Under the pieces are notes generated by a model. The model saw only the letters and a program-made list of their open reading frames with translations. It did no database searches and was not told where the DNA came from. 64,000 bases of DNA from Pavona decussata (taxonomy: Eukaryota), in assembly GCA_977016875.1 (NCBI GenBank), contig CDRNST010000143.1, forward strand, positions 434,001-498,000, in the 5' to 3' direction. Of this stretch, positions 22,201-63,348 are shown piece by piece. Position 1 is the stretch's first letter. Each line of letters opens with the position of its first letter. Position numbers and translations under genes: made by a program.

Positions 22201-22417
22201 GCTTGCATGTTATTGAAACAATGTTTAATTAGGCTGGTGTGAAATGCTGTTTATATTTCCCTGAAGACACAACGAGCGAGCTGTCCTTATAGCGAGCGAA
22301 TCTAAGACCCATTTCGCATGAGGCCGGCTGGTTTTGTAGACTGAATCAAGATTTGATCATTGGCGGTTTTCCAGCGGGGACAAAAATTGAGGAAAACCAA
22401 GGATTAACACGCTCACA

Positions 22418-26991: not shown

Positions 26992-27943
26992 TTTTTGAAC
27001 TTCAAAGAGCTGGCGCCGCGAAACTGAACCAATGAGCGTCGAACTTTTATCCAATAAAACGTAAGCGCCTTGTTTCCATTAAACTTGGAATAAATCAGAA
27101 CTTAATAGCTGCAGTTGTAAAGAAAGTATGTGTACTGTAAGTTAAATTATAAACTCAACGGAATGTAGAACGCTTTTAATGTTAGATAGAGTTATAACAT
27201 TTTTTATCCACTTTCTTTGAAACGTAGGCTCAATTTTTAGAGAACATGTGTTTAAAGGGATACTGTACACCCCAAAACAACAGTTTAAATACAGAAAGCT
27301 TATGGTCTAAATAAAAGATATTATTAAAAATGGAGTTCGTTCTCCCTTTTTTTTTCCTATAAAAAATACGAAAAAATTCTCGTCATGGAATTCTAACTCG
27401 CACTTAGGCGAAAACCGGAAATGCCGTGGAAAGAACAACTCGCCAAACCTTTTTCAGCTATATTTCCCTGTATTTCCTTAGCAAGATTGGGTGATTGGCT
27501 TGGTATTAGAATTTCAAAATAAATGTATAGTTCGTGTTTTGTGGGAAAATCCTTAACGAGTGTTTATATAGGACAGTTTATAAATGGCACAACAAAACAT
27601 GGTGCTTTTTCTCTGTAAAATTCCCCTTGTTCAGACACTGGCGAGGTTAAACCAGGCCACTTCAGTCAGGAAAATAAGACAAGGAGCCAAACTCGCTCGT
27701 GTTTCCGACTCAACAAGAATCTTGTTCTGTGACAGTTTAGAATATTGCATTAAAGAAGAGAATCAGTGTGCTTTCAACAAACGCCATGTCAAGGAAACTT
27801 TTTATCCTTTTACAGGAAAAATAAAAACTTTAATCCCACTTTCGCATGTTAAAAGTAGGTTACTTATGCAGTTCAATTAGTTTTGAAACCCTCTCTGTCC
27901 CTGAAACCTTTGAGAAGCGTAAGTCCTCAGTACAATGTCAATA

Positions 27944-28040
27944 GGGGGCAGGGATGGCGCAGTGGTGAGAGCACTCGCCTCCCGCCAATTTCAGTAGTCC
28001 AGGTTCGATTCCTGGCGTTGACACGACATGTGGGTTCACT
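27944..28040 (+). mobile_element. tRNA-derived SINE head (truncated)
   Basis: Pol III A box TGGCGCAGTGG and B box GGTTCGATTCC. Corresponds to the longer copy at 32202. Confidence 0.8.
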
Positions 28041-28256
28041 ATTGGGGCGATAACAAACAACCTGGACGGCTGGAACGGGTTTGATCACGTACTAGATAGA
28101 AGTGAGTTTTTGATCCGTGAAAGAAATGGAGCGATCAACTGTAAACGACTGTCAGACGGTGGAGGTGTTCGAGGCGATTCAAATCTATCCCAGAAATCAC
28201 ATCATCCCAGAGTACCAAAGTAGCGCCAACTTGACATGTAACCAAGATTTGGTTAA

Positions 28257-29024
28257 GGTGGCCGAACACAGTTTTCAAGTATACCGGTGTTAGTAAACAT
28301 TAATTGAAAACTACATACTTCTGAGTACCCGAAATTAGCATGGTGCAAAATTAACAAAGAAGGAATAAATTTTGATACTTCTTGTTGAGCAAGGTGCCGT
28401 TGCCATGGCACCACAGCAAGCTATTAACCGTCCATAAATAAAGGTTTTCCTTAATTTTTAGAAAATGCACTCGTTAGATTTTTTCCATTTTTTGTATCCA
28501 GACAAACTCACAAAATACTGACATAGTGACGCTGCTTTCATGTAATTTTAACAGAGATCTCCTGTAAATGTTGGTTTTGCACTTTAATGTTTTTTGAACA
28601 CACCTTCTGTTAGATTTTGTTTTTTGTTTGTAGGCGAGTTACGCTTTTAGAGAACTACTGTTTTGTCAAATTTCACGAAATTCTAACGAGCGGTTCCTTA
28701 GAAAACAGTTCATTTCCATTAAAACAACCAGTCACAATTTTTTGATCAAATGCGCATGCGTGGCTTTCAATTAGATTTTCTCAGCAAAGATGAAAGTGTA
28801 CAAAAAGGCTTAGCTCTTCGTGAACTCACTTTTTTTGTTCGGCGATAAATGAAGAAGGATTCACAAACAAGAAACTGAGTTATTTTAAGAGCTAAACTTA
28901 CATTTGTGATTTATTTAGTATAAAATCGAGGGATCGATAGTATTTGCTTACCACAACCCTAGCGCGCGCTTAATAGCATCACTAACAGAATCTGTAAAGC
29001 GCGCGCAAACTGTGTTCGGCCACC
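28257..29024. mobile_element. Kolobok-type non-autonomous transposon (768 bp) with TTAA target duplication
   Basis: TTAA|GGTGGCCGAACACAGTTT ... AAACTGTGTTCGGCCACC|TTAA. The empty site with a single TTAA is seen in copy 2 at 33929-33932. Confidence 0.92.
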
Positions 29025-29132
29025 TTAAATAAAGGCCATGATGAATTTTACATGGCTTGTGATTACTTTGCCGTTTAAAAGTCAACACTATTTGACGTTG
29101 AGGAGATTTTGAAAGGTGCATGTTGTTAACAA

Positions 29133-29886
29133 TTCCAAGAAAAGCTGTCTGTTAACAAAAAATATTTCCTATTTCCGAGAAAAGCGGATGGAGACCAGTT
29201 CAGTCCGACACATGTTTTAGTACCGCAACATGTTTTAATCATCATCAGCTTTTAGTGTTTATATTTAGTTATGTAGTGTAATTTATCCACCAAAATACGA
29301 TGCAAAATAAATGTGAAAATACATCAGGCTTTGAGCGAGTTTGCAAAGGGATCTAATTAATCGCAGAGTAAACTTCCTCGAAATGGACAGACCGGAAGTC
29401 GTTGTAGACATTCCGAGAAAATCAGATTCGGAATTTTCTGATTGGTCAGTCTGCTCAAGTATGACTCAACTTTTAAAGTTTCTTTAATGCTTTCATATAC
29501 TCTCATTTCATCTTAAATTTGATTCTTTTCTTGAAGCAACCAGGATATTTTGGGATCTAATGACGGAAAATATGGTTATTTGCCGAATGAGGCTTCGCTC
29601 ATATTAACAGGTAAGTCAGACTGACAACGAAAATTTTTATCAGAACACAATGCAATCATACGACCATTCGGGGGGAACCAAATGATAATGTTGCTATCAT
29701 AAAACTTTTAGCTATCACTTGTACACTATGAATGGTTGCTTCCGATCATTTTCATAGACATTTATGTGAGTTTGGTTGATAAACGTTTTTGAAAGCTTAC
29801 AACTGTGACTTGTAGACAATTCTCGGAAGACGATCATCGAGTTAAGGCGTCGGAAATATGCATAAATGATGGATTTTTTCCTAGAA
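29133..29886. promoter_or_regulatory. Putative STAT-responsive promoter/enhancer: six GAS sites, ETS and CCAAT
   Basis: TTCNNNGAA at 29133, 29173, 29374, 29411, 29820, 29878; ACCGGAAGT at 29391; ATTGG at 29441; splice donor CAG|GTAAGT at 29611. Confidence 0.65.
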
Positions 29887-30455
29887 AGGTCACAGAGGGC
29901 CTATGGCTTGCTTGTTTCCCTCTTCTTAGCCATCGCCTTCTGTAGACTTATGCCTGGTGGACTCTAATCCTGTATTCTTACATGTAGCTCTTTTATTGGT
30001 TTAATAGGCGTTCAGTTCGATAAACAAGCAAGCAGCTGCAGGTTATTTTCAGCAGCTGATGGACCGTAATTTTCGAAACTGTGTTCTTTATTATGTCTTC
30101 CAAAGGACATCTAATGGATCCGATCGATAGGCTCGGCCAAATAACTGCTTGAACAGACTTACAAATCATCAGCGAAATTCAATTTCACTATCTTCGTAAT
30201 GCTGCGACAATTTTCAACTTTTCAATTTCTCTCGGGCACGAGAAAGGCCGGCTAATTAGCAGCTGGAAATTGTGAGGAAATAAGATTTCGTTTCCCAAAA
30301 GGTTACCCTATTTTAATAAATATTCAGCTAAACAACCGAACAGATCGCAAAGCTAACTTAAATGATCTCAGATGGCTAAATTAGACGATAAAAAAATTAA
30401 TTAATTTTATTCAAGAAGTACTTTTACTGCAGTGAATTGTATGCTTTCGAAACTA

Positions 30456-30556
30456 AGTTTCAAGTTTCAAGTTTCAAGTTCAAGTTTATTCAAAAATTCA
30501 AAAATTTAGCAAAAAAGAGAGACTGGCCCACAGTAGGTAGCGAGAGCTAATCTAGG
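30456..30556 (-). mobile_element. Short LINE 3'-end insertion with (AAACTTG)n tail
   Basis: (CAAGTTT)x4 followed by TTTATT; absent from duplicate copy 2. Confidence 0.5.
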
Positions 30557-32201
30557 GAAGTCAGACATGCAACTGTTAAACGATCTGGGGAAACAGAAAC
30601 AAAAAAACTAACGAGAAAACCAATTTTCTTTCACTGACCTTAATTTGCTCGTGGTGTTCCTGAAATTTGAGCTTCGATTACGTGTGTGCTTGTTTTACAA
30701 GGTACTTTGGAAAAACTACTCTCCAGTATTCTGCTTAAAGTGTTGCTCATATTTACCCGTTGTGTCAGGATTGTCTCGATGGCTCAGATTCTCGTGGCAG
30801 CGTAACGGTAGGACGAGCATTCATTCAAGTACTACTCATAGATTCTAAAGGGAAAAGGGCGACAGTTACAACAGTATCTCAGCCAATAATGTTGGAGAAT
30901 ACCTGCCCCTATCTTTTCTTTTCTCTAGCCATTTACAAGTTTATGGACAATGGAGTAGACTTGACAATGAATTGGCAAAGTGCCTTCATCGCTAGGTTGC
31001 AACTTCATAAAATCTGATTGTGTTGACAATCTGTGTGTACGGTCTGCATGATGCTCAAAGATTGCAATGAAAAAATCAACTTAAAGACAATTATATTGTA
31101 CGGCATTGAAAATGCAGGGCCAAAAGATAATGAAAAGTTTTTAATGTTCTGAATTGTTTCCTTGGCAACCGAAACTTAATCTTCCCCTTGGATTTGTTGG
31201 TGGATCTTTCATAAACTGAAATGTAGCATCAGCTAGCTATTAGTTCAAGAATTGCTTGTTATAAATTTCATGTACATGTATTCATACAACTCCTAGTCTT
31301 GATACAATCCTGAGTTAAAACCCTCTGTGCATGTATGGAAAGGAGTAAAAAGAAAAAGCAAAGTGAAAGAAACTTCTTTGCTCTGATTTAATTCATACGT
31401 AACACTGAAACAAAGACATTATCCAAAATGCAACACAATGTCGAAAATCTATATTCAATTTTGACCTGTTCAAGTGACTGACAAACTGACTGAATTGCTG
31501 ATTAACTGGTTAGCTTGCTGGCTGACTGACTGACAAAATATATGGCCTGCTCACTGGCTAAGTAACTGGCTGGCTGGGGAGCTACCCAGGTCTCCCCTTT
31601 TTTTATCTCCCCTTTTTCCGTCATGGGATTCGAACTCGCGCTAAGGCCGAAAACAGAAATGACGTAGAAAGAAGAACTCACCAAACCATTTGCAGCTACA
31701 TTTACCTGTATTTCTTTAGCAACTGATTGAGTGATTGGCTTGATGTTAAAATTACAAAATAAAAATGTATAGTTCGTATTTTGTTGGAAAATCCTTAACG
31801 AGTGTTTATACATGCATGGCAGTTTATGATATAAGGCACTACAAAACATGGTGCTTTTCCTCTGTACAATTCCCCTTGTTCAGAGATTGGCGATGTTAAA
31901 CCAGGCCATTTCAGTCAGGAAAAAAGGACAAGGGGCCAAACTCGCTCATGAATGTTCGCGGCTCAAAAAGATGCTTGTCGTGTGACAGTTTAGAATGTTG
32001 CTTAATTAAAGAGGAGAATCAGTGTGCTTTCAAAAAAAATTCATGTCGAGGAAACCTTTTATCCTTTTACAGGAAAAATAAAAACTTTAATAACAATTTC
32101 CCTTGTTAAAAGTAGGTTACTTCTGCAATGCTATTAGTTTTGAAACCATCTCTGTCCCTGAAACCTTTGAGATGCGCTTAGTCTTTGGTACAATGTCAAC
32201 A

Positions 32202-32838
32202 GGGGGCAGGGATGGAGCAGTAGTGAGAGCACTCGCCTCCCACCAATTTGGCCCGGGTTCGTTTCCGGCGTTGATGCGAAATGTCGGTTCATTTTGTTGT
32301 TAGTCCGAGGGTTTTTCTCCAGGTTTTTTCCAGTACGTTTTCCTCCCTTCACAAAATCCAACACACTTCCACATTCCAGTTAGACCCACAATGCACGGAC
32401 AGCTTTGAAACGAGTTCCTTAAAGGGGACTGAAGTATCACGAAAATTTGCTGTCATTTCAAAACCCCAAAATGTTTGAATGTCAGCAGAAACAACGAAAT
32501 AATTGTCAAGTTTGTGAAAAATTATCACCCCAGTGCAATAAAACCGTCGATTAGTGCCTCTTGCCAGAGACAGAGTAGGCCGGTATGGATTGAAACTTGA
32601 AAAATATTAGGCTAATGTTTTTCAAGTTTTGTTTCCAAATGCACCAGAACAGATCACGAGTTGTTTCTTTCAAGAACTGAGTTGATTTCAGTCCTCTCGT
32701 CATTCTAGAATTATTTGGCTGGTGATTGAAGGTCTTATTTCATCATTTTTAACAAAAGATATCAAAAACCCCATGATACTTCCCCGTTAAGACCTCTTTG
32801 GTGCTGCGTGGGTGAACAAATTACGTTTACGTTTTACA
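32202..32838 (+). mobile_element. tRNA-derived SINE interrupted by a TTAA-flanked MITE (32423-32786)
   Basis: A/B boxes at about 32213-32267 and tail GTGGGTGAACAAATTACGTTTACG. Insert TTAA|AGGGGACTGAAGTATCACG ... CATGATACTTCCCCG|TTAA. Confidence 0.75.
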
Positions 32839-34053
32839 TGCCCAGTACTTCGTAATGCGTTTGACTTGTGAGGGATGTAAAGTAATGGCTAACCATTTTT
32901 CCAAAAGCGTAGAGTAAGGTTATGGATAGAATTTTCCCAACGTCGCTGAAGGCGAGGTTGAAAATAATTGCTTGAAAAAAAAAGCAGAGATGAAAATAAT
33001 TACTATGTTTTGACTGAGGAAGAATCAATGTGTTAAATAATACTGAAGAAAGTTTTACAGCTATGTAAATGTCTGTTCAGGGGGAAGCTGAAAAGTGTAA
33101 AATTCGAGTTCTCTCTTGGTGAAATCCGAGCTTCGGGTAGGGTGACCCTTTTTCGTGGTTTTCTGCCGTTATATGGAATATTTCAAAAAAACTAACCTAA
33201 TATCTTTACTTACTTACCTAGGCCTTCAAACTGACATAGTATGCATGAGCGAAATCGAATTTTTGACCGTGACCACTTTTTTTTTTTCATTCTGTTCGAT
33301 GTATACTGACACTGATTCTTAATACTACATTCAGCTGAAGATGGTTGCTTAATTTCAAATATCAACGCTAGTTTTTCAGGGGGTTTTTTTTCTAACCCTA
33401 ACAGTGATCAGCCTTAAATTTATCCTTGTAACATTAATGCCTATTCAAATCCCTTTGGTCATGACAGTAAGGTTACAATCACGCAACATAAATTCTTTTG
33501 ATATTGGTTTTTGGTTTATATTTTCAACAGTGCTTTTATGAGAAAAGTATGGAGACAAGATAGGAGAATTTGGTCTTTCTTGTAACAGGTTAAAGAAATA
33601 ACTTAAAGCGGGTTTTCGTGGTTGGAATGTACTTAGAAACAAATTTTTCGTATTTTTCGTAGCCCTAACTTGGCATGTAACAAAGATTCCGTTAAAAGAA
33701 AAACCTTTGATCGATAAATTTTACATTTTACGACCCGGTTGACTGGAACGGCTTCGATCACTTACTAGATAGAAGTGGGTTTTTTTGATCCGTGAAAGCA
33801 ATGGAGCGATCAACTGTAAACTACTGTCACACAATATAAAGGCGTTCGAAGCGATTCAAATCTATCCCACAAACCACATCATCCCAGCGTACAACCCAGC
33901 CCTAACTTGGCATGTAACAAAAATTTGGTTAAATTAAGACCACGATGAATTTTACATGGCATGTGATTACTTTGCCGTTAAAAAGTCAATACTATTTGAC
34001 ATTGAGGAGATTTTAAAAGGTGCATGTTATAAATAATCCTGACACTTAAACTA

Positions 34054-34803
34054 TTCCAAGAAAAGCTGCCTGGTAACTAAAGAAATGTTCCTATTTCCGA
34101 GAAAAGCGGATGAAGACCAATTCAGTCCGAGACATGTTTTAGCACGTTCAACATGGTTCATCGTCATCAGCTTTTAGCGTTTATATTTAGTTATGTAGTG
34201 TAATTTATCCACCAAAATACGATGCAAAATAAATGTGAAAATACATCAGGCTTTGAGCGAGTTTGCAAAGGAATCTAATTAATCGCAGAGTAAACTTCCT
34301 CGAAATGGACAGACCGGAAGTCGATGTAGACATTCCGAGAAAATCAGATTTGGAATTTTCTGATTGGTCAGTCTGCTCAAGTATGACTCAACTATTAAAG
34401 TTTCTTTAATGCTTTCATATACTCTCATTTCATCTTAAATTTGATTCTTTTCTTGAAGCAACCAGGATATTTTGGGATCTAATGACGGAAAATATGGTTA
34501 TTTGCCGAATGAGGCTTCGCTCATATTAACAGGTAAGTCAGACTGACAACGAAAATTTTTATCAGAACACAATGCAATCATACGACCATTCGGGGGGAAC
34601 CAAATGATAATGTTGCTATCATAAAACTTTTAGCTATCACTTGTACACTATGAATGATTGCTTCCGATGATTTTCATAGAAATTTATGTGAGTTTGTTTG
34701 ATAAACGTTATTGAAAGCTAACAACTGTGACTTGTCCACAATTCTCGGAAGACGATCAACGAGTTAAGTCTTCGGAAATATGAATGATGGATTTTTCCTA
34801 GAA
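34054..34803. promoter_or_regulatory. Second copy of the putative STAT-responsive module
   Basis: TTCNNNGAA at 34054, 34095, 34296, 34333, 34742, 34795; ACCGGAAGT at 34313; donor GTAAGT at 34533. Confidence 0.65.
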
Positions 34804-36924
34804 AGGTCATAACTCAGAGGGCCTATAGCTTGCTTATCTCTCTCTACTTAGCCATTGTGGTCTGTAGACGAATGCCTGGTGGACTATAATTCTGTACATC
34901 TTAGCTCTTTTATTTATTTAATAAACATTCAGTTCGATAAACAAGCAAGCAGCTGCAGGTTATTTTCAACAGACCGTAGCTTTGTACACTGTGTTCTTTA
35001 TTATGTCTTCCAAAGGACATCTAATGGATCCGACGGATAGCCTCAACCAAATAACTGCTTGAACAGACCTATAAATCATCAGCGAAATTTAATTTCAAGC
35101 TAGGTTCGTAATGCTGGGCAATTTGGAACTTCAGTTCAATTTCGCTTGGGCACGAGAAAGGCCGGCTTATAATATCTTATTTTGGACGGGCAACAGCAGT
35201 TCCGAAATGTGAGGAATCCCAAAATGGTACGCTATTTAGAAAATATTCAGCTAAAACAACCGAACAGATTGCAAACCTAAGGCCCAATGAAACGATCTGG
35301 AAAAACAGAAGTAAACAAGCTAAATCAATTTTCTTAAATTTACCTAAATTTGCTCGTGGTGGTGCTCCTGAATTTTGAGCTTCGATAAAGTGAGTGTGTT
35401 TGTTTTACTAGGTACTATAGAAAAACTGCTCTCCAGTTCGTCTGCTTAAAGTGTTGCTAAAACTTACCCATTGTGTCGTGAACCTAATTTGAGTCTCGAT
35501 GGCTCAGAGTCTAATGGCAGGGTTACTTTAAGACGAGTATACATTTAAGTACGAGTATAAATTCTATAGGAAAAGGTATGACAATTGATACTAGTAACAG
35601 TATTTAAGCTTAGCCAACAGTCTTCGAAAATATCAGTCTCCTATGTTTTCTTTTCTCTACACGTTTACAAGTTTGTTGACAATGGATTAGACTTGACAAT
35701 GAATTGGCAAAGTACTTCTATAGATTGCAATGTTACAAAATCTGATTGTGTTGAGAATCTATGGGCACGATCAGCTCAAAGATTGCAATGAAGGAATCAA
35801 CTTGAAGACATTCAATCATTTTGCACGGCATTGAAAATTCCTCTGCAGAGCCAGAGGGTAGTGAACATTTCCACGGCAGCCAAAAGTTAAAAAACATCCC
35901 CTTGGAATTTTTGGTGGGTCTTTCATTAAGTGAAATGTTATTATTATTAGTTCAAAATTTCTTTGTTGTATTCCATGCATTCATATAACTCCTGATCTTC
36001 ATACAAACCTGAGTTCAAATCGTGTGTGCGTTCGTGGAGTGGAGTAAAGAGAAAACTAAAAAAACTTCTTTGCACTGATGCTGCTGGAAAAAAAGACATT
36101 ATGCATAATGCCATACAATGTCCAACATTGACCAATTTGAGGGATGTCTTTGTCCGCACAATTGGAATTTGTTATCGACCTGGGTTGTTATATTTAAAGA
36201 CGACTTACAAGGCTCAAACGGCAATGAAATTTTATTAACACACGTGGTAAGAATTGATAATAAGTAAAAAGGACAGGATCCCTTGATTGACCGACAAGCT
36301 AACTGACTGTCTGATGAACAGATAGATTCACTGACTGAGTGACTAACTTACTGACTGGCTTGCTAATAAACTGGCTAGCTTGCTGGCTGACTGGCAGAAT
36401 GATTGGTCTGCTGACTGGCTTACTAACTGGCTGGTTGTGGAGCTGACTAACTGACTAATTAAATAGTTTGCTGGTTGGTTTGCTGACTGCNNNNNNNNNN
36501 NNNNNNNNNNNNNNNNNNNNNNNNNNNNNNNNNNNNNNNNNNNNNNNNNNNNNNNNNNNNNNNNNNNNNNNNNNNNNNNNNNNNNNNNNNNNNNNNNNNN
36601 NNNNNNNNNNNNNNNNNNNNNNNNNNNNNNNNNNNNNNNNAGTTTCAGACTTACTGACTGACTGATGGACTGAGCAACTGAGTAATAAATCAAGAAAGTG
36701 TATGATAAGAAATGAATGAACTTAAAAAAGCTAAATGAGTATGATCAGTTGCCAAAACGTAGCCAGTAGAAATCAAAAAGTTCATTATCCTGTCTGTTTT
36801 TTGTTCTACAAAATCTGTAGATGCCTAACTAAGTTATTTTTTGTGCACACTGTATCCCTGTATGGCATCTCTTTTCTTATTAGACGTTTAAATCTTAATT
36901 TATTAGCTGGTGCTAACCAGGAAC

Positions 36925-37041
36925 TCTACCACTACAACCACAACCATCACTATTATCATCACTGTGTCTACCACTATATCTACCACTTCCAGTACCACTG
37001 GTACCATAACCACCACTTCCATCATTACCACTACGGCTACT
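36925..37041. repeat. Degenerate (ACC/ACT)n trinucleotide repeat
   Basis: Thr-rich/His-rich translation; runs into an N-gap. Confidence 0.7.
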
Positions 37042-37450
37042 NNNNNNNNNNNNNNNNNNNNNNNNNNNNNNNNNNNNNNNNNNNNNNNNNNNNNNNNNNN
37101 NNNNNNNNNNNNNNNNNNNNNNNNNNNNNNNNNNNNNNNNNNNNNNNNNNNNNNNNNNNNNNNNNNNNNNNNNNNNNNNNNNNNNNNNNNNNNNNNNNNN
37201 NNNNNNNNNNNNNNNNNNNNNNNNNNNNNNNNNNNNNNNNNNNNNNNNNNNNNNNNNNNNNNNNNNNNNNNNNNNNNNNNNNNNNNNNNNNNNNNNNNNN
37301 NNNNNNNNNNNNNNNNNNNNNNNNNNNNNNNNNNNNNNNNNNNNNNNNNNNNNNNNNNNNNNNNNNNNNNNNNNNNNNNNNNNNNNNNNNNNNNNNNNNN
37401 NNNNNNNNNNNNNNNNNNNNNNNNNNNNNNNNNNNNNNNNNNNNNNNNNN

Positions 37451-41999: not shown

Positions 42000-42060
42000 T
42001 GACGTCAGCATTCCCAGAAAAACGACCGGAAGTTTGAATCATTGTTAATTTTTCCTAGAA
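42000..42060 (+). promoter_or_regulatory. Putative ZNFX1 proximal promoter (CRE-GAS-ETS-GAS)
   Basis: TGACGTCA 42000-42007, TTCCCAGAA 42011-42019, ACCGGAAGT 42025-42033, TTCCTAGAA 42052-42060, about 1.3 kb before the first coding exon acceptor. Confidence 0.6.
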
Positions 42061-55400: not shown

Positions 55401-58400
55401 CTCCGATGTTACTCCTAATGGTGCTGAGAGACGAGACCTCAGCGGCGGCTTTCAGTTCCAGAATGCTCACCGAATTAGACAAAAGATCAAACAAATCATT
55501 CGGAGAGAGCTCAAGAACGATGAGATGATGAGCAAGGACGAAGCTACCCAGGTAATTATATGAATGTACGATAACATTAAAAGTTGTAATCATACGCTGG
55601 AAAAAGTGCCTTAGCTTGTGGTAAATTATACCCTAAAAATAACTGCAGTTTTGTTTTCTTTAACTTTTGTTTCTTTTCATTTCAAAATTCATTCAGTCAA
55701 ACAATGACGACCAGAAGACCAAAAAAGGCAAGGAAGCACCGGCTTAGCAAATTTTGTCTGAATGGCCACACTTTATAGTAGGATTTCCCCCCTCTCCCCT
55801 CCCGAATAGAAATGCTTATGTGTTTTACAATGCTTAAATATGAGTTGCGATAAAGTCTGAAAAGAGTCTATTCTTCCAAAATCACCGATACGTAACTCCC
55901 GTTTAAGTAGCGCAAAGTGAATAGGAGCATGACCACTTCACTGCTATTTATTGGACAATTGTTAAAAACTCTATGGTGATCGTTATTTCAGGTTGAGGAC
56001 GTGTGGGAAGTTCATGACACAGCGGATCGCTGGCGCCTGTACCGCAGATGGGTGTATGATGCTCGTGAGAGCTGTTACCAAACTATCTTTCAGTTGCAAG
56101 AAATGTTTGATGACAAGGCAGATGAGCTTCAAGAACTAAGAAATAGGGAAGATTACGAGATCCTTAAAGACGCAGATGTAGTTGGGATGACCACTACAGG
56201 TAGAAGCAATGTTAAACCAGCTCAGCGTTAGAGTTACTAGCCCCAAAGTGCCGTGCTAACCTCTTTCAATCTAGTTACTTTATCGCCTGATACCCAAGTT
56301 GTGGAATCATCTGCCAGCCTCCCTCTGCTCTCCCTCCTATATCAACAAATTTATATCTCATTTAATTAAACTATGCCAATGCCCTAACTAACCCTTTTAA
56401 CAATTAACATGTGTCCTAAATACGGTGCTTCGTCCGCACAACATTTTAACTCCAAACATTTCCTGTTTTTGATTACGTTACTATAACGATTTGTAGGAAA
56501 ACTGTGTTTTGTTTTGTTTTGTTTTTTTATAGTCAGTAGTAATCACAAGTACTTAATAATCAATACAACCAGTATAGTGAGAATGTATCCTCTATTCTTC
56601 CTAGATTCTTCATAAGCCACGTGGATTAAATTTTCCATTAAATTATTGCTTTTAGGTGCTGCGAGGCATCGAAGTCTGTTGCAAGAGTTGCAACCAGTGA
56701 TTACTATTGTGGAGGAAGCCGCTGAAGTGTTTGAGGCACACACGGTTACCTCTTTAACTTCAGGATGCCAACACTTAATTCTGATCGGTGATCATCAACA
56801 ACTCCGTCCCAATCCCACAGTCTACGATCTCCAGAAAAATTACGCTTTGGACGTGTCGCTGTTCGAGAGAATGGTGACCAATGGACTACAATTTGAAAGG
56901 TTGTGCTTACAGCACCGAATGCGACCAGAAATCGCCAAGACGTTGGATCACATATATGTCAACCCAAGACTGCAAAATCACGATAAGGTGCTGAAGTTTG
57001 AAAAGGTTAAAGGCGTGGAACGAAATTTGTTTTTTGTGGACCATAGCAAGAAAGAGGTAATGACGTTTAACTTAACCATGCATCGCATTTACTGAGTTGA
57101 GTTGAGTTGAGTTGAGTTTAATTTTCAATTGTATTATATATATTTCCCTTGTCTAAACGCGTCTGTTACGAACACCTTGAAGTCCAAGTTTAATTTTGCC
57201 TAAACTCCCAAACGTGCAAATATTTCTTGAAACATTGTCACTAATTTGCAGTCAAACTGATTTAGCTAGATCGGCACTAATCACAAAAGAGTAAAATGTC
57301 CCCAGTAAAATCACCAAAGTTACCTACGGTGTAAAAGCCAGCCTACAATTTAGATTTACCTTTGTAGGACAGTGTCAAAGAAGGGAAAAGTAAAGCCAAT
57401 CTTCATGAAGCTAAATTCCTGACAGCCCTATGTCGCTACTTCATTCAGCAAGGTCAGTACAAGCAAGAACAGATTACAGTTCTAGCAGCGTATAGTGGAC
57501 AACTTGTCAACCTGAGGCGAGAGATGTCAAAAGACATGGAGTTTTTTGAGGGCGTGCGTGTCACTGCGATAGACAATTTTCAAGGAGAAGAAAATGAAAT
57601 CATCCTTCTATCGCTTGTTCGCAGCAAGAGGATTGGCTTTCTCAAGATCGCAAACAGAGTCTGCGTTGCGTTATCGCGAGCTCGAAAAGGCTTTTACATT
57701 ATCGGAAATGCCACGCTTTTGTCTGAACAGGACCCTGAGCTCTGGGGGAAAATCATCACAGATATGCGCGAACAAGGAAATCTGGGAACCCACTTAAAAC
57801 TTGTGTGTCAGAATCATCCCCAAAACTTCATTGAAGCATCGAGTGCAGATGATTTCGAGAACGCCCCAGAGGGAGGATGCAGTGAGCAATGCCAGTTCGG
57901 TATGCCTGACTGTGAACACATTTGTCAATCATTCTGTCATCCCATCGATATCGAACACAAAGAGGAATTCGCTTGCCAGATGCCATGCACTAGAAGGTGC
58001 GATAACGGTCATCAATGTCCCAAGATCTGTAGCGAAGACTGTGGCCCCTGTATGGTGAAAGTACCGAAGATCATTCCCGAATGTAAACACGAACAGGAGG
58101 TCCCTTGTTCTATGGATCCCTCTGAATTCAAGTGCAAGCAGATAGTAAAGAAAAAAGCTTTGCCTTGTGGTCATGTGAATAATGCCGAGTGTTCAATGGC
58201 TGCTGATGAAATCAAATGCAAGAAACCCTGTGGTTTGTTAGAGTGTGGCCACCCTTGTCAAGGTAAGAGTTAAAGACCACGACCCGGATGTTGCATAGCC
58301 GATTAACGGTAATCTATGATTAAAAGTTAACCGAGATTTTCAGCTTACTTGTTAAAATTTTTTTAAAATCTAATTTGAAGCTAATAATAAACAAAGGTCA

Positions 58401-61400
58401 AAATCAAACCTGATGGACATAAATCTTTTGAAAAATCTTTATTGTTTAGTAGTTAAACTCGAATCGTTAATCCAGGATTAGCTTAATCGGGCTTTGAACA
58501 ACTCGTCCCAGATAATAACGACATTAACCAGAGTTTATAGAGCAATAAGGATGGAGAAAGAGTGCGTGAAAGTTGGGAATTAGTCGGGGCTTAAGCTCCT
58601 GTTAACCCTCGATTAATTCAATTAATCTCGTTCTCAGTTGTTTATCCGGGCATTATTGTTGAATTGTTGAGTTCGGTTTATTTGTATACACTGTTTAATC
58701 GCGCTTGACGTCAAGAAATTGAGAAAAGGGCGCTGACTCTGCATTACTCCGTTGATTATATATAACTCTGGTGCAATGGTGTATTGGTTAGCGTGTCGGA
58801 CTTCCCGGTAGAAAGACGGAAGGAAACGGGTGCGTGGTTGGAGGCTGGTTCACTTCCGCATCAATTGCCTCCCGGGACAACATACCTTACTCAGCACAGT
58901 CCCCCTCCACCCACTTCAATAACTAGGTATCAGCAAACCCTTATTGAGGCTTAGCAAAATGTTGTCATGGGTAACCCTCCAATGGACTAGCATCCTATCC
59001 AGGGGGATCGAGTAGTAATGCTACTAATCGCCTCATGCTGCCTGAAATGCTAGTTTTACGCACCGATTTCGATGAATAACTATGTTGTTGAGTTAGAACG
59101 GACCAATATCCTTTGGGGTTATGCTAAACATAACTTAAAAGGTTTTTTTTTTCTGATTAACAGGCAATTGCAACCTTTGTCATCAAGGGCGTCTTCATCT
59201 GCCCTGTAATTTTCAGTGCAACCGCACTCTGTTTTGTGGTCACACTTGTAAAGACAAATGTGTCCGCCCTTGTCCGCCTTGTTCAGAAATGTGTGGGATC
59301 TGCAAACAGAACTGCGGAATTCCTTGGAATCGCCCACATCAGAAACGCCCAGAGTTTTCCTCAGAGCAATACAAGAGACAAAGGTGCGACAATCCTTGTC
59401 AAGAACAGCTTGGGCATTCTTGCATTGGAATTTTCGGAGAAGTTGGCCCTAATCTGTGTCGAGTTTGCAACGAAGACGCTGTTGAGTTCAGCGAGAGTGA
59501 GCGAGAAGCTAGGTTTGTAGAACTGGTGGACTGTCGTCATGTGTTTGAAGTGAAGACATTGGATCAGTGGATAGATGAATCTGCCGTTGAGGAAGGTGAA
59601 AATGAAATAAAACGGAGACAGTGCCCCGAGTGCAATACCCCAATTTTGCACATACACAGATACCAGGAAATCCTTTCCGATTTTAACGCTGTTAAACGTC
59701 GAATCCTCCTTTCCAACGTTGTAAGTCATGAGCAGGTAAAGAGAATTCTAGAGGAATTGAAAACATTTAGGGCAGAAGAAATGAAGGTACACGTTCAAAA
59801 CATAGAGCGATCTATCAACAGCAGTAGTTTGACCTCTCAACAAGTAAGCAAGTGTCAAAACCAAGTTACTTTTCTCAAATTCCTTGACCATCTGATCACA
59901 AAGTACAATCTCACAAGTGAAATGAATCAGAAGCTTTTTTGCAGTATAAATTTTCTTACAAAACGGATAATGGAAAGACGCCTTTGCTTTAGTGAACAAG
60001 AAGTCAAGGAATTTATGGACGAGCTTTCAAGAACAAAGCTCCTCGTCTGCTTGGAATGTTTAACGATTGCGCTAGAAGGCAAGGCCCTAACTCTCAAAAC
60101 AGAAGATGACAGGATTGTGAACTCTATAAGAAGAACTTTGGCGTCAGGAAAAGTAGTTGGTAAGTGCACTTTTAAGTTCTCAAAGAAACGTTTTGAAGTA
60201 AATCCTGGAGTCTTGGAGTCTGTTGCGGAGTTTGATTTTGGAGTGTTTTTGTCTGTTTTGAGTTCCCTGGCACATCTTGACATTATAACACACAAGTCAA
60301 GGGTAAAATTAAACGACATAATAACTTTATACTCAGTCCATTTTAATTTTAGCGTTTTATTAGGTTAACTTTTTTTTTCTTTGTTTTTCGTCTCGAAAAA
60401 AGAATGTTTATTTACTTTACAGCCACTTTTAAACGGTCTTAAACAGTATATGGATGAATCGTTTAGTGAATTATGATGTAATTTGTCATACAGTCGTTTT
60501 CAAGCAGTTTCATATAACAAAATTAAAATCTTTTAAAATGCATTTACCTCTTTTAGGTCAGCAGAAGATGGAAATGTTTATGGCTGATATCAACAGAATT
60601 AAGAGGCGGTACGGGTTCGTCAAGGAAGTGGAGCCGACTGACTCCAAGTCAGAGCTGAAACACATTGTCATGACAAAACACCTCGCTCAAGGACCCTGGT
60701 ACAAATGCAGCAAAGGTACTTCAAATCATGAAGCTTCAAACTAAAAGTTAAGCTAATGTGACAAGGCTCAGCGTTGAAGTGTATCTCTCTCATCTCCCAA
60801 GGCGTGATTTTAATTTGACTAAGAGCTCTACCTCTTTATACTACTAAACCGTCTATCAATAAGTCGTAGTCAAACTTTTTTTTAATAAGAATATGACAGT
60901 GACATGTTTCTAGATCTTCAGTGTTGTAGCAATAGCTTTCTCGAAAGGGTTAAATGACTAATTTGACCGTAGTTGTTCAAAAAGTGGATAACCAATTAAC
61001 AGTTATTTCGCAATGCCAAATCTCGTCATGAGGTCATTTCAGAGACAACCAACTCGAATGCACAAACTGAAATCACTCAAGGGAAATGTTCGCTTCTTAT
61101 GGCTTTCCGAATCTTTCACGCAGCTTTTGTTTGTCGCTGTTTTCTTTATAGACAAAAATCTACTCCAATGCAAAAAAAAGTATAGTACCAACCTCATTGC
61201 CCACCGTCTAATACTTGAATGAAATGAAAGCAGGTTCGCTGTCGTGACCAGCGTGCTCAACGATTTTAATGAATACACTCACTTATATTGAGTTTATCCG
61301 ATGACTTAAAAAATATCCATTGAGAAATTCTTTTCTGTCTTTTAACTGGGGGCAGTATTAACGATAGTGCCATAGAAAAATAATGTAAACGTTTCAAAAA

Positions 61401-63348
61401 ACATGAATTAAACTGTCTAACACTCATTCATAATGACGGCATAGAACGGTAAAAATGCATCCAAAACGCTGCCAACATATAAATATAAGATGTAAAACCT
61501 GCTCTATCACCACGATTTTTCCCACGCCATGAAGAATACAGCCAATCAAAGAGTTGGAAGGGCGTGGCGTGTTCCACATTCTAGAGAACTGTGTACATGA
61601 GTTTAAAAAAAATGCATTTCAACGTCTTTTCGAAATATCTTAAGACTTTCCTCGCAAACCTTTGTTATTCTTTGCCAGTCTTCGGAGTGGTTCATGAATG
61701 GTACGAAATGTTTGATTGACCTTTCACAACATGTAAGGAAATCAATTGTTCGGGAAATCTTCGGAAAATAGGAGGGAGTCTTCGGAACTCTGAATATTTC
61801 TGAAATATGTTTGCAAACTTTAAAGGACAAACTGCTCTTGTGTACACAGGAGTCTTATGAATCACTTTTGGGAGGCTTGATCATGAGTCACTTGTGGTAC
61901 GTTTCAATGAATAAGTATATCTCTTCAAAGCATAGCAATAACGAGTATTCATTTGCTCTTACTCTCATCGGACAGGTCACGTTTACTCCGCTGTTGAACG
62001 CGTTGAAGAAGGTTCTATCAAGTGTCCAGATTGTTTCGCGGCGAAAATTAGGATTCAATGGGCAAAAGCAGAGGTCAGTCGTGATAAAAGGGATGAATGT
62101 TGACATACTAACAATGTGTTTTGAAAGTGTCTAACCAATAACACAAAGTGGGCGCCAAATCAATATAAAATTAATTCCATAGAGAACAAACAGAAACCAA
62201 CTAAATTACATTATCACAGGAACCTTAACGCGGACCGGTTTGTGAGTTGTTAAGGTATCTAAAATTGTCACAGCTTAAATGTATCGTGAATGTGAAAGTC
62301 AAGACATTTTTCATGTTCAACTTTGTCGAGGATGATTAAGTAAATAATATTCGATAAAAAACTTAAAACTTACCAATTAAAATTTGTGCACTATAAGATC
62401 AGAATATGCTGAAGAGAGAAATCTGAATGTTTTTAAAAAGATGATGCCTCCTTATCTACAGAGGTGTTATTGCACAGTTTATGGCAATGTGGTCTCAACA
62501 AGGGCTCTTCAAACCCAAAAGAGAAAATTTGGGTAACCACGCATTTTTCAAAGGTAATTAAGCAACAATAATTTAAAAAAAAAATTGACATACAATGTTT
62601 TTCAAATTGAAGCTTAATTATCTCTGAAAAATGCGAGTTTACCCCGGCCCCAATTTCCTTCTTGCATTTCAACAGTCTTTGCTAGCTAAGAACTTCATTT
62701 CCCGCATAGTCAGAAGCCGCGCAAAAAAAATACCTTTGAAATACAGTAGGTACTATCCACAAGGAATCAGAGCCGGATTCTCGGACTATCCCAAGACTGA
62801 GAGAACTTATGTTCAGTAGCAAAAGGAGGCACCATCCTTCACGCCCAGGATTAAGAATTTAAGATCATAATGATAGCAATGATTGTTGCGGAAATTTTAA
62901 TTTAAGCTTTAAAAAGCTTCGCTTTTTATCTGTAATAAGTTAATAGTACCTTCCCATGGCGCTGTTATATCTCATGGCAAGAGCGCCAAGTGTTCGATCC
63001 AATGGTTGGTGATACCGAACATGACACTGATCTCTACTTTTGTGTTATTTGGTCGCACAAGACATACTACCCAAGATTGTCTCTATTCATTTACCCAGAT
63101 GAATAAATAGCTAGATACCACGAGGGAAACCCTACCAGGAAATTCAACGGCCGTTTTTTTTAGGAAAAGTGGATGTACTAGGAAACTAATCAAACTGGTT
63201 TTGCTTTTTTATTACCTAGGTTGTGCCCACTCGTAAACGACGACCTCAAAAGGTGCACGTGACCATAGCACGCAAACCCGCATTTTGCCCAGCTGGCGCC
63301 AGGAGAGGAAGAAGGCGAAGACAATTTAGCAGGAATCTCAACCAATAA
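43440..63348 (+). CDS. ZNFX1: NFX1-type zinc finger-containing protein 1-like SF1 (UPF1-like) RNA helicase, about 3170 aa, 17 coding exons
   Basis: Phase-consistent exons: 43440(ATG; acceptor 43353)-47451, 47808-48298, 48741-48896, 49215-49345, 50167-50222, 50681-50877, 51463-51726 (alt donor 51666), 52417-52696, 53566-54234, 55181-55551, 55992-56199, 56656-57056, 57368-58262, 59164-60159, 60557-60715, 61976-62073, 63220-63348. Sum 9513 nt, divisible by 3. Motifs: [26 protein letters not shown], Walker [24 protein letters not shown], Walker [43 protein letters not shown]1-type Cys/His fingers, RZ finger. The start codon, the weak acceptor at 50680 and the last exon are less certain. Confidence 0.92.
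44550..45370 (+). repeat. Coding tandem repeat of 141/147 bp (47/49 aa) in the ZNFX1 N-terminal exon
   Basis: Units start at about 44550, 44697, 44844, 44985, 45126 and 45273 (consensus [19 protein letters not shown](CT)[28 protein letters not shown]). Degenerate copies extend over about 43600-46850. Confidence 0.95.
51852..52147 (+). mobile_element. Full-length tRNA-derived SINE in a ZNFX1 intron
   Basis: Head GAGTGGTTAGGGCGCCGGACTTGAAATCCGGTGGTCCCGGGTTTAAGTCCC, body, AATAAA and (TATG)n tail. Confidence 0.8.
53566..54234 (+). CDS. LamG-like / concanavalin A-like jelly-roll domain exon inside ZNFX1 (669 nt, phase 1-1)
   Basis: Strong polypyrimidine acceptor and an uninterrupted frame. Motifs [50 protein letters not shown] are typical of Laminin_G_3-type domains. 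Donor GTTGGT is weak. Confidence 0.85.
58770..59045 (+). mobile_element. Degenerate tRNA-derived SINE
   Basis: A-box-like TGGTGTATTGGTTAGCGTGTCGGACT and 3' block TGGACTAGCATCCTATCCAGGGGG..TCGCCTCATGCT. Confidence 0.6.
60557..62073 (+). CDS. ZNFX1: ZNFX1 C-terminal exons encoding a degenerate RZ (RNF213-ZNFX1) finger
   Basis: Exon 60557-60715 ends GPWYKCSK-G (phase 1). Exon 61976-62073 continues [19 protein letters not shown]. Read-through gives a stop at 62101-62103. Confidence 0.75.
62436..62842. mobile_element. Copy of the Kolobok-like MITE family seen at 1569
   Basis: AAGATGATGCCTCC ... GGAGGCACCATCCTT ends; interior similar to 1620-1880. Confidence 0.6.

Follow-up and report, generated by a model that had tools for sequence, protein, structure and literature searches.

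Is the ZNFX1-like gene of this coral locus a working member of its family, and if so, what has become of its recognition and E3 parts? ZNFX1 is known as a conserved helicase and E3 ligase with an antiviral role. Only lately has its regulation been described: a plug in a variable insertion is auto-inhibitory, and the E3 has two sites. In the 64-kb window (the whole stretch of DNA analysed) we find on the plus strand a multi-exon gene, with its CDS at 43440-62103 (~9.5 kb coding), that encodes an SF1 helicase of the ZNFX1 family with a predicted length of ~3,180 residues. On balance, and with moderate confidence, we favor the reading that this is an expressed and constrained ZNFX1 paralogue, a defence RNA helicase that gained a LamG domain, whose E3 function is Miz-only or provided in trans and whose promoter is of an ETS/GAS type. 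The initial annotation described it as a domain-remodelled ZNFX1 paralogue, and a LamG exon, a repeat tail and loss of the RZ catalytic pair within a ZNFX1-family frame agree with that description. Features are listed in Table 1.

Table 1. Coordinates of the ZNFX1-like gene and of its upstream elements, with the basis for each
Feature	Position	Strand	Basis
Local tandem duplication	27580-36490	+	copies ~27580-31550 and 31829-36490, 77-98% identical
Distal module, copy 1 (TTCCTCGAA..GACCGGAAGT..TTCCGAGAA)	29374-29419	+	inside conserved block 29025-30389
Distal module, copy 2 (duplicate of copy 1)	34296-34341	+	duplication alignment
Proximal module: CRE-like TGACGTCA, GAS TTCCCAGAA, ETS ACCGGAAGT, GAS TTCCTAGAA	42000-42060	+	conserved
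Exon 1 part 1, disordered repeat N-terminal extension	43440-46922	+	ORF, repeat analysis
Exon 1 part 2, armadillo-type domain	46923-47456	+	predicted donor G/GTAGAG; intron-type indels after it
ZNFX1-domain (PF25396) exon	47807-48328	+	predicted acceptor ..TTGTCAG/GG; 48328 is the open-frame end
Helicase N-terminal exon	48741-48896	+	43% identical to intronless paralogue
Small exon ..VNPPAYLKK.. within open frame	49215-49346	+	coordinates are those of the frame, not exon limits
Walker A exon (GPPGTGKT)	50713-50880	+	profile match, alignment
Motif Ia exon	51451-51729	+	aligns to 716-802 of human ZNFX1 chain 9q9z_A
Coiled-coil exon of regulatory insertion	52415-52695	+	3' joint read-verified
LamG/ConA-like exon	53565-54232	+	in-frame splicing, phase 0 in, phase 2 out
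Acidic linker exon with conserved motif, candidate auto-inhibitory plug	55179-55548	+	cDNA, alignment
Helicase exon at insertion end	55989-56197	+	homology, cDNA
Motif II/III exon	56654-57054	+	profile, cDNA, alignment
RecA2 exon (motifs V, VI) and proximal NFX1-type zinc fingers	57366-58262	+	AAA_12 E 5.7e-27, cDNA
Eroded distal zinc fingers, Miz-like pattern, coiled coil	59164-60365	+	60365 is the open-frame end
RZ first half, exon ending ..GPWYKCSK+G	60433-60715	+	60433 is the open-frame start; donor G/GTACTT
Last exon, RZ second half and TGA stop	61976-62103	+	sequence alignment

Expression and coding constraint

The ORF at 43326-47537, which holds the ATG at 43440, is open over 1404 codons. 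Spliced transcripts of the gene are present as cDNA contigs in two studies; one contig of 5,270 nt (X1) carries five GT..AG joints, contigs of X5 carry GT..AG joints too, and the DNA run X16 has none. Read-verified splice joints span 52415-59164, and the remaining frame is predicted from homology, phase arithmetic and conservation.

Compared with the syntenic ortholog, dN/dS is 0.12-0.36 over the P-loop, helicase, LamG and ZNFX1-domain exons (P-loop exon 0.12, LamG 0.26, ZNFX1 domain 0.36), 0.54 on the exon at 52417 and 0.67 in the repeat N-terminal tail. With the tandem neighbor as reference it is 0.10-0.21 over the helicase and LamG exons. The exon at 52415-52695 is highly polymorphic, with an allelic N:S of 15:6. 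The initial annotation argued that the gene is not a pseudogene, and named a lack of expression or a dN/dS near 1 over the helicase as evidence that would count against its reading. Spliced RNA is seen, the ~9.5 kb frame is open and dN/dS is low on the exons named above, from which we conclude that this is not a pseudogene.

Domain order and the repeat N-terminus

The core of the protein follows human ZNFX1 (PDB 9q9z, 9eve), with which it shares the armadillo domain, the ZNFX1 domain, the UPF1-like SF1 motifs and a variable RecA1 insertion with a conserved acidic motif. Next come an NFX1-type stalk of zinc fingers that is intact in its proximal part, a Cys/His pattern like that of Miz domains, and a C-terminus of RZ type in which the zinc ligands are present. 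The armadillo domain matches 9eve_A, a human ZNFX1 fragment, at E 8.3e-5 over 150 residues and is 77% identical in the ortholog, while PF25396 matches at 48071-48298 with E 7.5e-27 (93.9 bits against a cut-off of 27). SF1 helicase motifs I, Ia, II, III, V and VI are all intact in the AAA_11 and AAA_12 profiles and in the alignment, and the helicase matches human chain 9q9z_A at E 6e-77. The protein would remain an ATP-driven RNA-binding helicase, presumably of antiviral or foreign-RNA defence.

The coral gene differs from human ZNFX1 in its LamG domain, placed in the insertion, and in a long repeat IDR at its N-terminus. This extension places 1,161 disordered residues, in open frame, between the ATG and the armadillo domain, in line with the ~1150-aa repetitive N-terminus first reported for the gene. 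It is rich in K, N, R, T, E and D, with 11% hydrophobic residues and a net charge of +74, and is built of degenerate 42-49-aa repeats. The extension is in frame with the armadillo domain and includes a tandem array of 147 bp x 5.6 (92% matches) at 44520-45328. In the ortholog the extension has 911 residues and the repeat array is more diverged. A charged tail of this length may promote RNA binding or condensate formation.

A LamG domain within the helicase insertion

The variable insertion starts after the motif Ia exon, which aligns to human chain 9q9z_A, and the LamG exon sits in this regulatory insertion of RecA1, ~50 residues upstream of the acidic motif. Its integration, already proposed from the first reading of the DNA, is supported by profile, fold and transcript. 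Laminin_G_3 matches the exon at E 2.5e-11 (44.4 bits against a cut-off of 27.6) and a Pentaxin profile also matches, at E 2.9e-6. An AlphaFold2 model (pLDDT 94.7) has 14 strands arranged as a ConA-like two-sheet jelly-roll, and Foldseek pairs this model with lectin-like jelly-roll subdomains at probability 1.0, TM 0.6-0.74 and 10-18% identity, a likeness at fold level only. The cDNA contigs of both studies join the exon in frame between helicase exons. Outside ZNFX1, the closest kin of this LamG sit in extracellular multi-lectin mosaic proteins that hold VWA, C-type lectin, F5/8C, pentraxin, tectonin, CUB and SUEL domains.

The acidic motif, EADLI..QR, is conserved among coral ZNFX1-like proteins and resembles positions 905-925 of human chain 9q9z_A, in an alignment that is not significant by itself. 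In human ZNFX1 the auto-inhibitory plug, given as residues 828-836, blocks the RNA groove (10.1101/2025.10.14.682297); the coral motif is a candidate for its counterpart. We propose that LamG would give the helicase a second recognition or regulatory surface, one that may act on the adjoining candidate plug.

Zinc fingers, RZ and the retained Miz-like pattern

The proximal NFX1-type zinc fingers are intact. In comparison with three paralogues, at least ~8 Cys ligands are gone from the distal fingers, which are also shortened by two deletions. This bears out the erosion originally described, and is a further difference from human ZNFX1. Among the paralogues the erosion is confined to the present copy, and its ortholog is partly eroded.

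In ZNFX1 the catalytic pair of the RZ is C1860 and H1881 (10.1101/2025.10.14.682297), and we mapped the coral RZ residues onto C1860/H1881/H1853 of that preprint. The first half of the RZ ends in WYKCSKG, as compared with WYKCPNGHIYAIGECGG..CPDC..IGGTKH for the RZ of intact paralogues: in the alignment Arg stands in place of the catalytic Cys and the His of IGGxxH is missing, with the zinc ligands kept. Set against the RZ module of RNF213 and ZNFX1, the coral gene keeps the CxxGH...CxxC zinc scaffold and the preceding helix but has neither the transthiolation Cys (RNF213 C4516 / ZNFX1 C1860) nor the His that works with it. PF20173 has no match on this RZ, whereas five paralogues score 62-90 bits. 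Between this gene and the ortholog, the exon at 60433-60715 shares 83% identity.

A Miz-like RING/U-box Cys/His pattern, CRVC..DCRH..CPEC, is retained and is conserved in four paralogues. The region has no profile or PDB sequence match, so that the call is made from the Cys/His pattern, and human F1575 and Q1623 could not be aligned to it. Since the Miz-like domain gives most of the in-vitro E3 activity of human ZNFX1 (10.1101/2025.10.14.682297), the coral protein, judged by its sequence, need not be E3-dead. The earlier claim of a catalytically dead RZ stands as far as the absent Cys and His are concerned; to call the protein E3-dead would be too strong. Ubiquitin output may instead be reduced to a one-step Miz-type transfer, or RZ-competent paralogues that join it in mixed polymers may supply this output in trans.

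GAS-ETS-GAS promoter modules

Three GAS-ETS-GAS modules of the TTCN3GAA type lie upstream of the gene, at 29374-29419, 34296-34341 and 42011-42060. All three modules counted in the initial annotation are thus present, but only two are independent, a duplicated distal block and the proximal module, because the two distal modules are copies of one tandem duplication. This duplication of 4.3-4.9 kb has only two copies in the genome and corresponds to a single-copy block at the ortholog locus (L016), where all six GAS-like sites of the distal block are kept. The block at 29025-30389 also holds ATTGG and a donor CAG/GTAAGT near 29609. As its whole 800 bp are conserved, conservation there is not site-specific; the GAS-like palindromes also overlap ETS/IRF-like cores, which makes site-specific conservation inseparable from that of the block. 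The proximal module begins 1.4 kb before the ATG. The ortholog conserves this module, and the tandem neighbor retains its three islands though the flanks have diverged.

Single GAS sites are mildly enriched in the window (40 vs 29 expected). Genome-wide, the composite GAS-ETS-GAS arrangement occurs 15 times against ~2.8 expected, and CCGGAAGT, the ETS core, is by itself not enriched. One further module lies upstream of the tandem neighbor, and others lie upstream of PARP14-like (Macro 1e-24, RRM_PARP14_3 6e-12) and RdRP (1e-36) genes, which were assigned to the modules at 4-8 kb downstream and without gene models. This common module suggests, at the level of sequence, a common defence regulon. 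Vertebrate GAS/ISRE promoters of ZNFX1 and PARP14 likewise have TTCN3GAA palindromes at the corresponding genes; the coral sites differ from those of vertebrate ISG promoters in flanking a central ETS CCGGAAGT core.

STAT is present in cnidarians, and no interferon system and no JAK are known in these animals. Six-frame searches of the genome with the STAT profiles PF02864 and PF01017 gave no match, probably because these domains are split by introns. Transcription would start from an ETS-centered promoter flanked by two GAS-type palindromes, for which STAT or another factor is the candidate binder. The composite module shared with PARP14-like and RdRP genes offers a way to probe antiviral co-regulation in interferon-less animals. 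A bolder proposal, which we advance tentatively and consider unlikely as a whole, is that a LamG lectin module of extracellular type was exon-shuffled into the auto-inhibitory insertion of a cytosolic helicase and gates the acidic plug there. Activation would then be a form of coincidence detection that depends on a second, non-nucleic-acid ligand, and the gene would belong with the PARP14-like and RdRP genes to an interferon-independent GAS-ETS-GAS regulon.

Paralogues and alternative readings

The ZNFX1 family comprises 11 loci in this genome, with fast-evolving and polymorphic recognition-type parts. The family being expanded and polymorphic, it is a candidate marker of coral antiviral or stress responses. 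Three LamG-ZNFX1 genes on one contig form a small coral-lineage clade. The tandem neighbor shares both the LamG and the dead RZ. The third copy (C143:1,035,367-1,057,816) has the same exon structure, LamG position (50% identical) and acidic motif, but differs in its intact RZ and distal fingers and in a short RGG-type N-terminus in place of the long repeat. The remodelled architecture is conserved in other assemblies (L008; L016/L034). A further, intronless clade belongs to the same family (it includes the NCBI 'NFX1-type zinc finger-containing protein 1-like' entries of Stylophora, Montipora and Oculina) and has four copies at C51:3.31-3.38 Mb, one of them frameshifted. At its C-terminus, which reads WKQCEHRQVYY..CRQC, the RZ catalytic pair is likewise missing, and the acidic EADLI..QR motif is present, but the clade is without LamG and introns and has a long intact zinc-finger array. 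Its helicase exon is 53-55% identical and it forms a separate clade with 100/100 support, which indicates that its RZ loss was an independent event.

These comparisons bear on the idea that the gene is a STAT-induced, sensor-only ZNFX1 that has lost its E3 output and signals via an intact executor, its LamG being an integrated decoy or sensor as in plant NLR-ID receptors. The idea draws on the missing RZ catalytic pair with its kept zinc ligands, on RZ-competent paralogues, one of them LamG-bearing on the same contig, on conserved and recurrent GAS-type sites, and on the finding that human ZNFX1 forms polymers and acts in trans as a ubiquitin ligase (10.1101/2025.10.14.682297). The NLR-ID likeness is a functional analogy only: a foreign recognition-type domain in an immune ATPase and tandem gene pairs are common to both, whereas the protein families are unrelated, the coral pair partner is no complementary executor and the decoy role is only putative. 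Being RZ-dead itself, the tandem neighbor cannot be an RZ executor, nor does LamG integration track RZ loss, the third LamG copy being RZ-intact and the RZ-less intronless clade having no LamG. With the Miz-like E3 pattern retained and STAT not detected in the profile searches described above, we judge this sensor-only account doubtful.

We regard as quite improbable a non-immune role like that of the C. elegans ZNFX-1, in which the gene would encode a germ-granule or small-RNA helicase that forms condensates through its IDR and the shared module would be the sign of an RNAi or genome-defence program rather than of one induced by pathogens. Nematode ZNFX-1 has a role in small-RNA inheritance, the long charged IDR here and the RGG-type IDR of the third copy would suit such a function, and an RdRP gene has the same promoter module. 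However, the PARP14-like genes that share the module fit innate immunity better, and immune genes typically show what is seen in this family, expansion together with recognition-type parts that evolve fast and are polymorphic.

It is highly improbable that the gene is a duplicate in slow decay under relaxed selection, with its dead RZ and a runaway repeat as signs of this, LamG a tolerated passenger and the GAS-like sites ordinary ETS-promoter sequence: the tail dN/dS, the allelic N:S and a distal finger erosion that is specific to one copy and progressing relative to the ortholog could reflect relaxed constraint rather than adaptation, and the lack of enrichment of CCGGAAGT itself fits, but against this stand the open frame and the low dN/dS of the exons for the helicase, LamG and ZNFX1 domain, a LamG that three paralogues share and that is also present in two or more further assemblies (L008; L016/L034), the spliced transcripts, and a composite module that is more frequent than expected and is preserved between paralogues whose flanks have diverged. 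In the reading we favor, that of a constrained defence helicase, the coral clade amounts to a set of natural variants, with LamG beside the candidate plug, the RZ catalytic pair present or absent, and one copy with a shortened finger stalk, from which the contribution of each part could be gauged.

Upstream retroelement and assembly gaps

Three assembly gaps (36491-36640, 37042-37450 and 39785-40188) lie at least 3.2 kb upstream of the ATG, outside the CDS. They fall in or beside a LINE-type retroelement with an RT ORF at 37550-39316 (RVT_1 E 3.3e-39). The LINE insertion has no counterpart in the ortholog, where 37042-41705 matches only ~360 bp, and is lineage-specific.

An intact and spliced reading frame for a ZNFX1-family helicase

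All searches were run exon by exon on the LamG-bearing ZNFX1-family gene (+ strand, CDS 43440-62103), here called the window copy. In stop-to-stop frames of the + strand the Pfam matches follow in the order ZNFX1 domain, N-terminal part of AAA_11 with Walker A, Laminin_G_3, C-terminal part of AAA_11 and AAA_12, and no disruption is seen in helicase motifs I, Ia, II, III, V and VI. The exon encoding RecA2 and the first zinc fingers matches human ZNFX1 (chain 9q9z_A) with an E value of 6e-77. Named proteins nearest to the ZNFX1-like proteins of the window belong to three stony corals, Oculina, Montipora and Stylophora, and some of the sequencing runs in which parts of the window occur carry the label coral metagenome. 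An intronless paralogue (L006, 2,653 aa) can be aligned to the window copy exon by exon.

Splice joints were sought by mapping reads to 52400-58300. One contig of 5,270 nt from cDNA run X1 and several contigs from X5, a cDNA run of a second study, contain the joints 52695/53565, 54232/55179, 55548/55989, 56197/56654 and 57054/57366, each with GT..AG, and continue past 58262/3 into the 59164 exon. None of the joints of this region was found in the DNA run X16, and phase arithmetic shows that the frame is kept at every joint. Exon 1 is predicted to end at G/GTAGAG near 47456 and exon 2 to start at ..TTGTCAG/GG near 47807; between these two points the alignment with the syntenic ortholog of another assembly (L016/L034) has indels that would break a reading frame, their lengths not being divisible by three. 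The remaining junctions outside the read-verified joints are likewise predicted. Summing the exons gives about 9.5 kb, in agreement with the reading frame initially annotated.

The start codon is at 43440 and the reading frame is untouched by the assembly gaps (Table). An interruption of the CDS by these gaps is ruled out by the listing of N runs and by the alignment with L016, where window segments 36943-37041 and 41706-42188 align only ~360 bp apart. The 4.7 kb between 37041 and 41706 is thus a lineage-specific insertion, and the true gap lengths bear only on the distance from the distal promoter modules to the gene. A further N run of 733 bases (4298-5030) lies outside the locus, and its Ns give rise to spurious long "ORFs" nearby.

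Coordinates of features (window positions unless a contig is named)
Feature	Location	Strand	Remark
GAS-ETS-GAS composite	29374		distal
GAS-ETS-GAS composite	34296		distal
GAS-ETS-GAS composite	42011		proximal
Composites 4-8 kb upstream of PARP14-like or RdRP ORFs	C408:120208, C408:174935, C320:132763, C129:1204347		L039, L042-L044; no gene models
N runs within the locus	36491-36640, 37042-37450, 39785-40188		in and beside LINE-type element
LINE-type element ORF	37550-39316		RVT_1 match 3.3e-39
Small exon	within 49215-49346	+	open frame
RZ split G/GT	60715/61976	+
Stop codon	62101-62103	+
Large arrays of single-exon Laminin_G_3 units	C180:885-947 kb, C70:89-188 kb, C78:2.81-2.84 Mb, C318:3.45-3.47 Mb, C266

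Constraint on the helicase and variation in its insertion

Compared with the ortholog (dS 0.20-0.28), dN/dS is 0.12 in the P-loop exon, 0.20-0.29 in the neighbouring helicase exons, 0.36 in the ZNFX1 domain and 0.44 in the armadillo part; compared with the tandem LamG-ZNFX1 neighbour downstream (dS about 1-1.6) it is 0.10-0.21. Spliced cDNA and these low helicase values are the opposite of the silent gene or the dN/dS near 1 that would have spoken against the initial annotation. The underlying observation is real, and the window copy is a functional-looking, remodelled ZNFX1.

Each helicase-core exon of the X1 cDNA differs from the window at only 1-2 nt, as opposed to 26 of 281 nt (9%) in exon 52415-52695, 22 of 668 in the LamG exon and 12 of 370 in the exon with the acidic motif; variation is thus far higher in the insertion region than in the core of the enzyme. 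In exon 52415-52695, 15 of the 21 listed changes are non-synonymous and eight alternative letters equal those of the ortholog, and both alleles at 52547-52661 are present in DNA run X16. The deep allelic divergence is local to 52415-55548, the helicase insertion, among contigs with near-identical helicase-core exons.

A repetitive N-terminal tail joined to the armadillo domain

From the ATG to the armadillo-side motif there are 1,161 residues rich in K, N, R, T, E and D (11% hydrophobic, net charge +74), composed of degenerate units of 42-49 residues and containing an array of 147 bp x 5.6 with 92% matches. Over the next 179 residues there is a match to 9eve_A, a fragment of human ZNFX1 (E 8.3e-5); we equate this fragment with the armadillo domain in the human cryo-EM preprint (10.1101/2025.10.14.682297). 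The repeat thus shares one open frame with genuine ZNFX1 sequence, which bears out the repetitive N-terminus proposed earlier. In the first exon of the ortholog the same motif is preceded by 911 residues, with a more diverged array (4.7 copies at 72%). Where the repeat can be aligned, its dN/dS is 0.67, a sign of weak constraint that fits a disordered region still changing in length. A homologue search with the armadillo part, which covered proteins of up to 2,457 aa, returned only one ortholog ORF.

A LamG domain within the RecA1 insertion, close to an acidic motif

The LamG exon (53565-54232) matches the Laminin_G_3 profile with 44 bits and is predicted to fold into a 14-strand jelly roll (pLDDT 94.7); its dN/dS relative to the ortholog is 0.26. 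A Foldseek search with the model found fold-level relatives only, namely lectin-like jelly-roll domains with 10-18% identity. In the alignment with the human chain, the exon in front of LamG covers positions 716-802 and the exon behind the insert region falls on the part that closes the insertion. This places LamG within the variable regulatory insertion of RecA1, termed 1B/1C in human ZNFX1 (10.1101/2025.10.14.682297).

In the human protein this insertion holds a short, highly acidic and conserved "plug" helix that blocks the RNA groove (10.1101/2025.10.14.682297). A conserved acidic motif stands ~50 residues after LamG, with comparable motifs in the ortholog and in the third LamG copy (C143:1,035,367-1,057,816). 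The motif reads (E/R/K)EADLIxxQR in the intronless clade and in named coral proteins and IEIAEEADLIQADRVIEEEE in the human chain, an alignment that alone is not significant; we infer from these sequences a putative counterpart of the human plug helix. PDB sequence searches with the C-terminal, acidic and coiled-coil exons gave no matches, so neither the Miz domain nor the plug could be placed on human ZNFX1.

In the intron after the LamG exon, contig depth at 54173-54566 is thousands-fold above that of the flanks in all four runs, with many partial joints, which points to a high-copy dispersed repeat. The corresponding intron of the ortholog holds a Tc5/pogo-type DDE transposase ORF (L034:11472-12737, - strand), and there is none at that place in the window.

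Origin and spread of the LamG domain

Three ZNFX1 paralogues carry LamG, and all of them lie on contig C143: the window copy, the neighbour 8 kb downstream (63% LamG identity to the window copy) and the third copy at 1.035-1.058 Mb (50%). The same exon order is present in two other public assemblies (L008 and L016/L034). Genome-wide we found >125 LamG_3 exons, mostly in tandem arrays, with 30-42% identity to the ZNFX1 LamG. Its nearest non-ZNFX1 relatives in a library of 1.8 billion proteins are large mosaics, 35-38% identical, that pair LamG_3 with VWA, C-type lectin, Sushi, F5/8-C, pentraxin, WSC, tectonin, CUB, SUEL-lectin and EGF domains. These are extracellular proteins of the pattern-recognition type, and exon shuffling out of such a mosaic gene would be the simplest origin of the LamG. 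A representative-library search with the LamG exon surfaced no annotated full-length LamG-ZNFX1 protein; ZNFX1 helicase sequence was absent from its best 150 proteins, and only ORF-fragment orthologs surfaced.

The 5' part of the third LamG copy (L033/L030, C143:1,035,367-1,044,400) encodes an RGG-repeat N-terminus, GGGGGRGRGRGRGGGRGGRG, and an intron of this copy holds a 1,107-aa ORF that is probably a mobile element.

Eroded zinc fingers and repeated loss of the RZ catalytic pair

We aligned the exon from 59166 with its counterparts in the tandem neighbour, the third LamG copy and the intronless paralogue. The window copy alone has two deletions in the zinc fingers, of 6 and 9 residues, and only there is the CNWQCPHHNCTKPCGEPCNRPRC of the aligned paralogues replaced. 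The ortholog is intermediate in this erosion, which is therefore progressive. Past the zinc fingers a Miz-like pattern is kept in all four sequences.

RZ motif regexes gave no match in the window, the neighbour or the intronless copy, and the C-terminal exons were then read directly. Five paralogues have an intact RZ (WYKCPxGHIYAIGECGGAM..CPxC..IGGxxH), as opposed to W(Y/F)KCSKGHVYSA(V/A)ER(V/I)E..CP(D/H)C without IGGxxH in the window copy and neighbour. In the human RZ, H1853 is a zinc ligand, C1860 is catalytic and H1881 is its partner (10.1101/2025.10.14.682297), and by this spacing both coral copies keep the zinc ligands and have lost the catalytic pair. The catalytically dead RZ of the initial annotation is upheld as far as the pair is concerned, but a loss of all E3 function is not established, as the Miz-like pattern is kept. 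The human Miz domain alone supports most in-vitro auto-ubiquitylation, and in cells both sites are needed, with trans-ubiquitylation in polymers (10.1101/2025.10.14.682297). On these grounds the window copy may keep one-step E3 activity or lean on partners.

The 602-Mb genome has eleven ZNFX1-domain loci, five of them with a PF20173 match. Helicase exon identity to the window copy is 78% in the neighbour, 73% in the third LamG copy, 63-67% in the other RZ-intact copies and 53-55% in the intronless RZ-less copies. Exon trees pair the window copy with the neighbour (97/92 and 89/86) and place the intronless clade in a separate group with Stylophora, Oculina and Montipora proteins (100/100), without resolving where the third LamG copy belongs. 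A single RZ loss common to the window copy and the intronless clade is ruled out by these identities and trees. Instead, RZ was inactivated at least twice and the gain of LamG was uncoupled from it, contrary to the proposal that an integrated domain tracks RZ loss.

Four intronless ZNFX1-like genes, with ORFs of ~2,600 aa and without LamG or catalytic RZ, are clustered at C51:3,312,000-3,381,000; one of them (3376928-3379535) is split in two frames (1134 + 1520 aa) by a frameshift or an assembly error. A ZNFX1-like helicase of Oculina patagonica (P0223, LOC144651630 isoform X2, 3,037 aa) is annotated with the glycosyltransferase-type domains PF00534, PF20706, PF13692 and PF20694; it is either a further variant with an integrated domain or the product of a gene model that was fused.

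A shared GAS-ETS-GAS promoter module

TTCN3GAA occurs 40 times in the window against 29 +/- 5 expected, only a mild excess. We defined a composite as TTCN3GAA-(4-30)-CCGGAAGT-(4-30)-TTCN3GAA. The three GAS/ETS modules first annotated are all present, but the two distal ones are copies, one in each half of a local 4.3-4.9 kb duplication found nowhere else in the genome. With just two local copies, a dispersed transposon is ruled out for the distal module. The proximal module lies 1.4 kb upstream of the ATG and adjoins TGACGTCA. Genome-wide there are 15 composites (about 10 after collapsing paralogous copies) against ~2.8 expected under independence, based on 12,405 CCGGAAGT sites, of which 211 have an upstream and 162 a downstream GAS. 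A fourth copy of the module, at C143:499548, is upstream of the neighbour.

A three-way alignment shows conservation of the two GAS islands and the ETS island between them, but not of the flanks. The distal block is ~90% conserved overall; in the ortholog it is single-copy and keeps six of six GAS-like sites, and the proximal module is kept too. Its CCGGAAGT, ATTGG and donor CAG/GTAAGT make the distal block look like a promoter and first exon. Downstream of other composites are three PARP14-like loci (Macro 1.1e-24, RRM_PARP14_3 5.9e-12 and weak PARP14 KH matches) and, downstream of another, a eukaryotic RdRP (1.3e-36). Going by the vertebrate and insect consensus, the GAS-type sites are candidates for STAT binding. 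No STAT domain turned up in searches of this genome, probably because introns split these domains.

A STAT-induced sensor working with an executor paralogue, as suggested initially, has partial support: the features behind it are observed, but the neighbour also has a dead RZ and LamG and RZ are uncoupled. In the literature on ZNFX1 in cnidarians or corals we found nothing on domain architecture or induction. The points of most interest are the lectin-type domain beside a candidate auto-inhibitory plug, the LamG paralogues that form a natural series with and without an intact RZ, and the GAS-ETS-GAS module that is shared.

Both duplication copies contain a tRNA-like stretch, GGGATGGCGCAGTGGTGAGAGCACTCGCC (27922-27991 and 32180-32249), possibly a tRNA-derived SINE. 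A single-exon class C GPCR is encoded at 22391-25249 on the + strand (ANF_receptor 3e-72, NCD3G, 7tm_3 2e-65), and a class C GPCR is also syntenic upstream of the ZNFX1-like gene at the ortholog locus L016.
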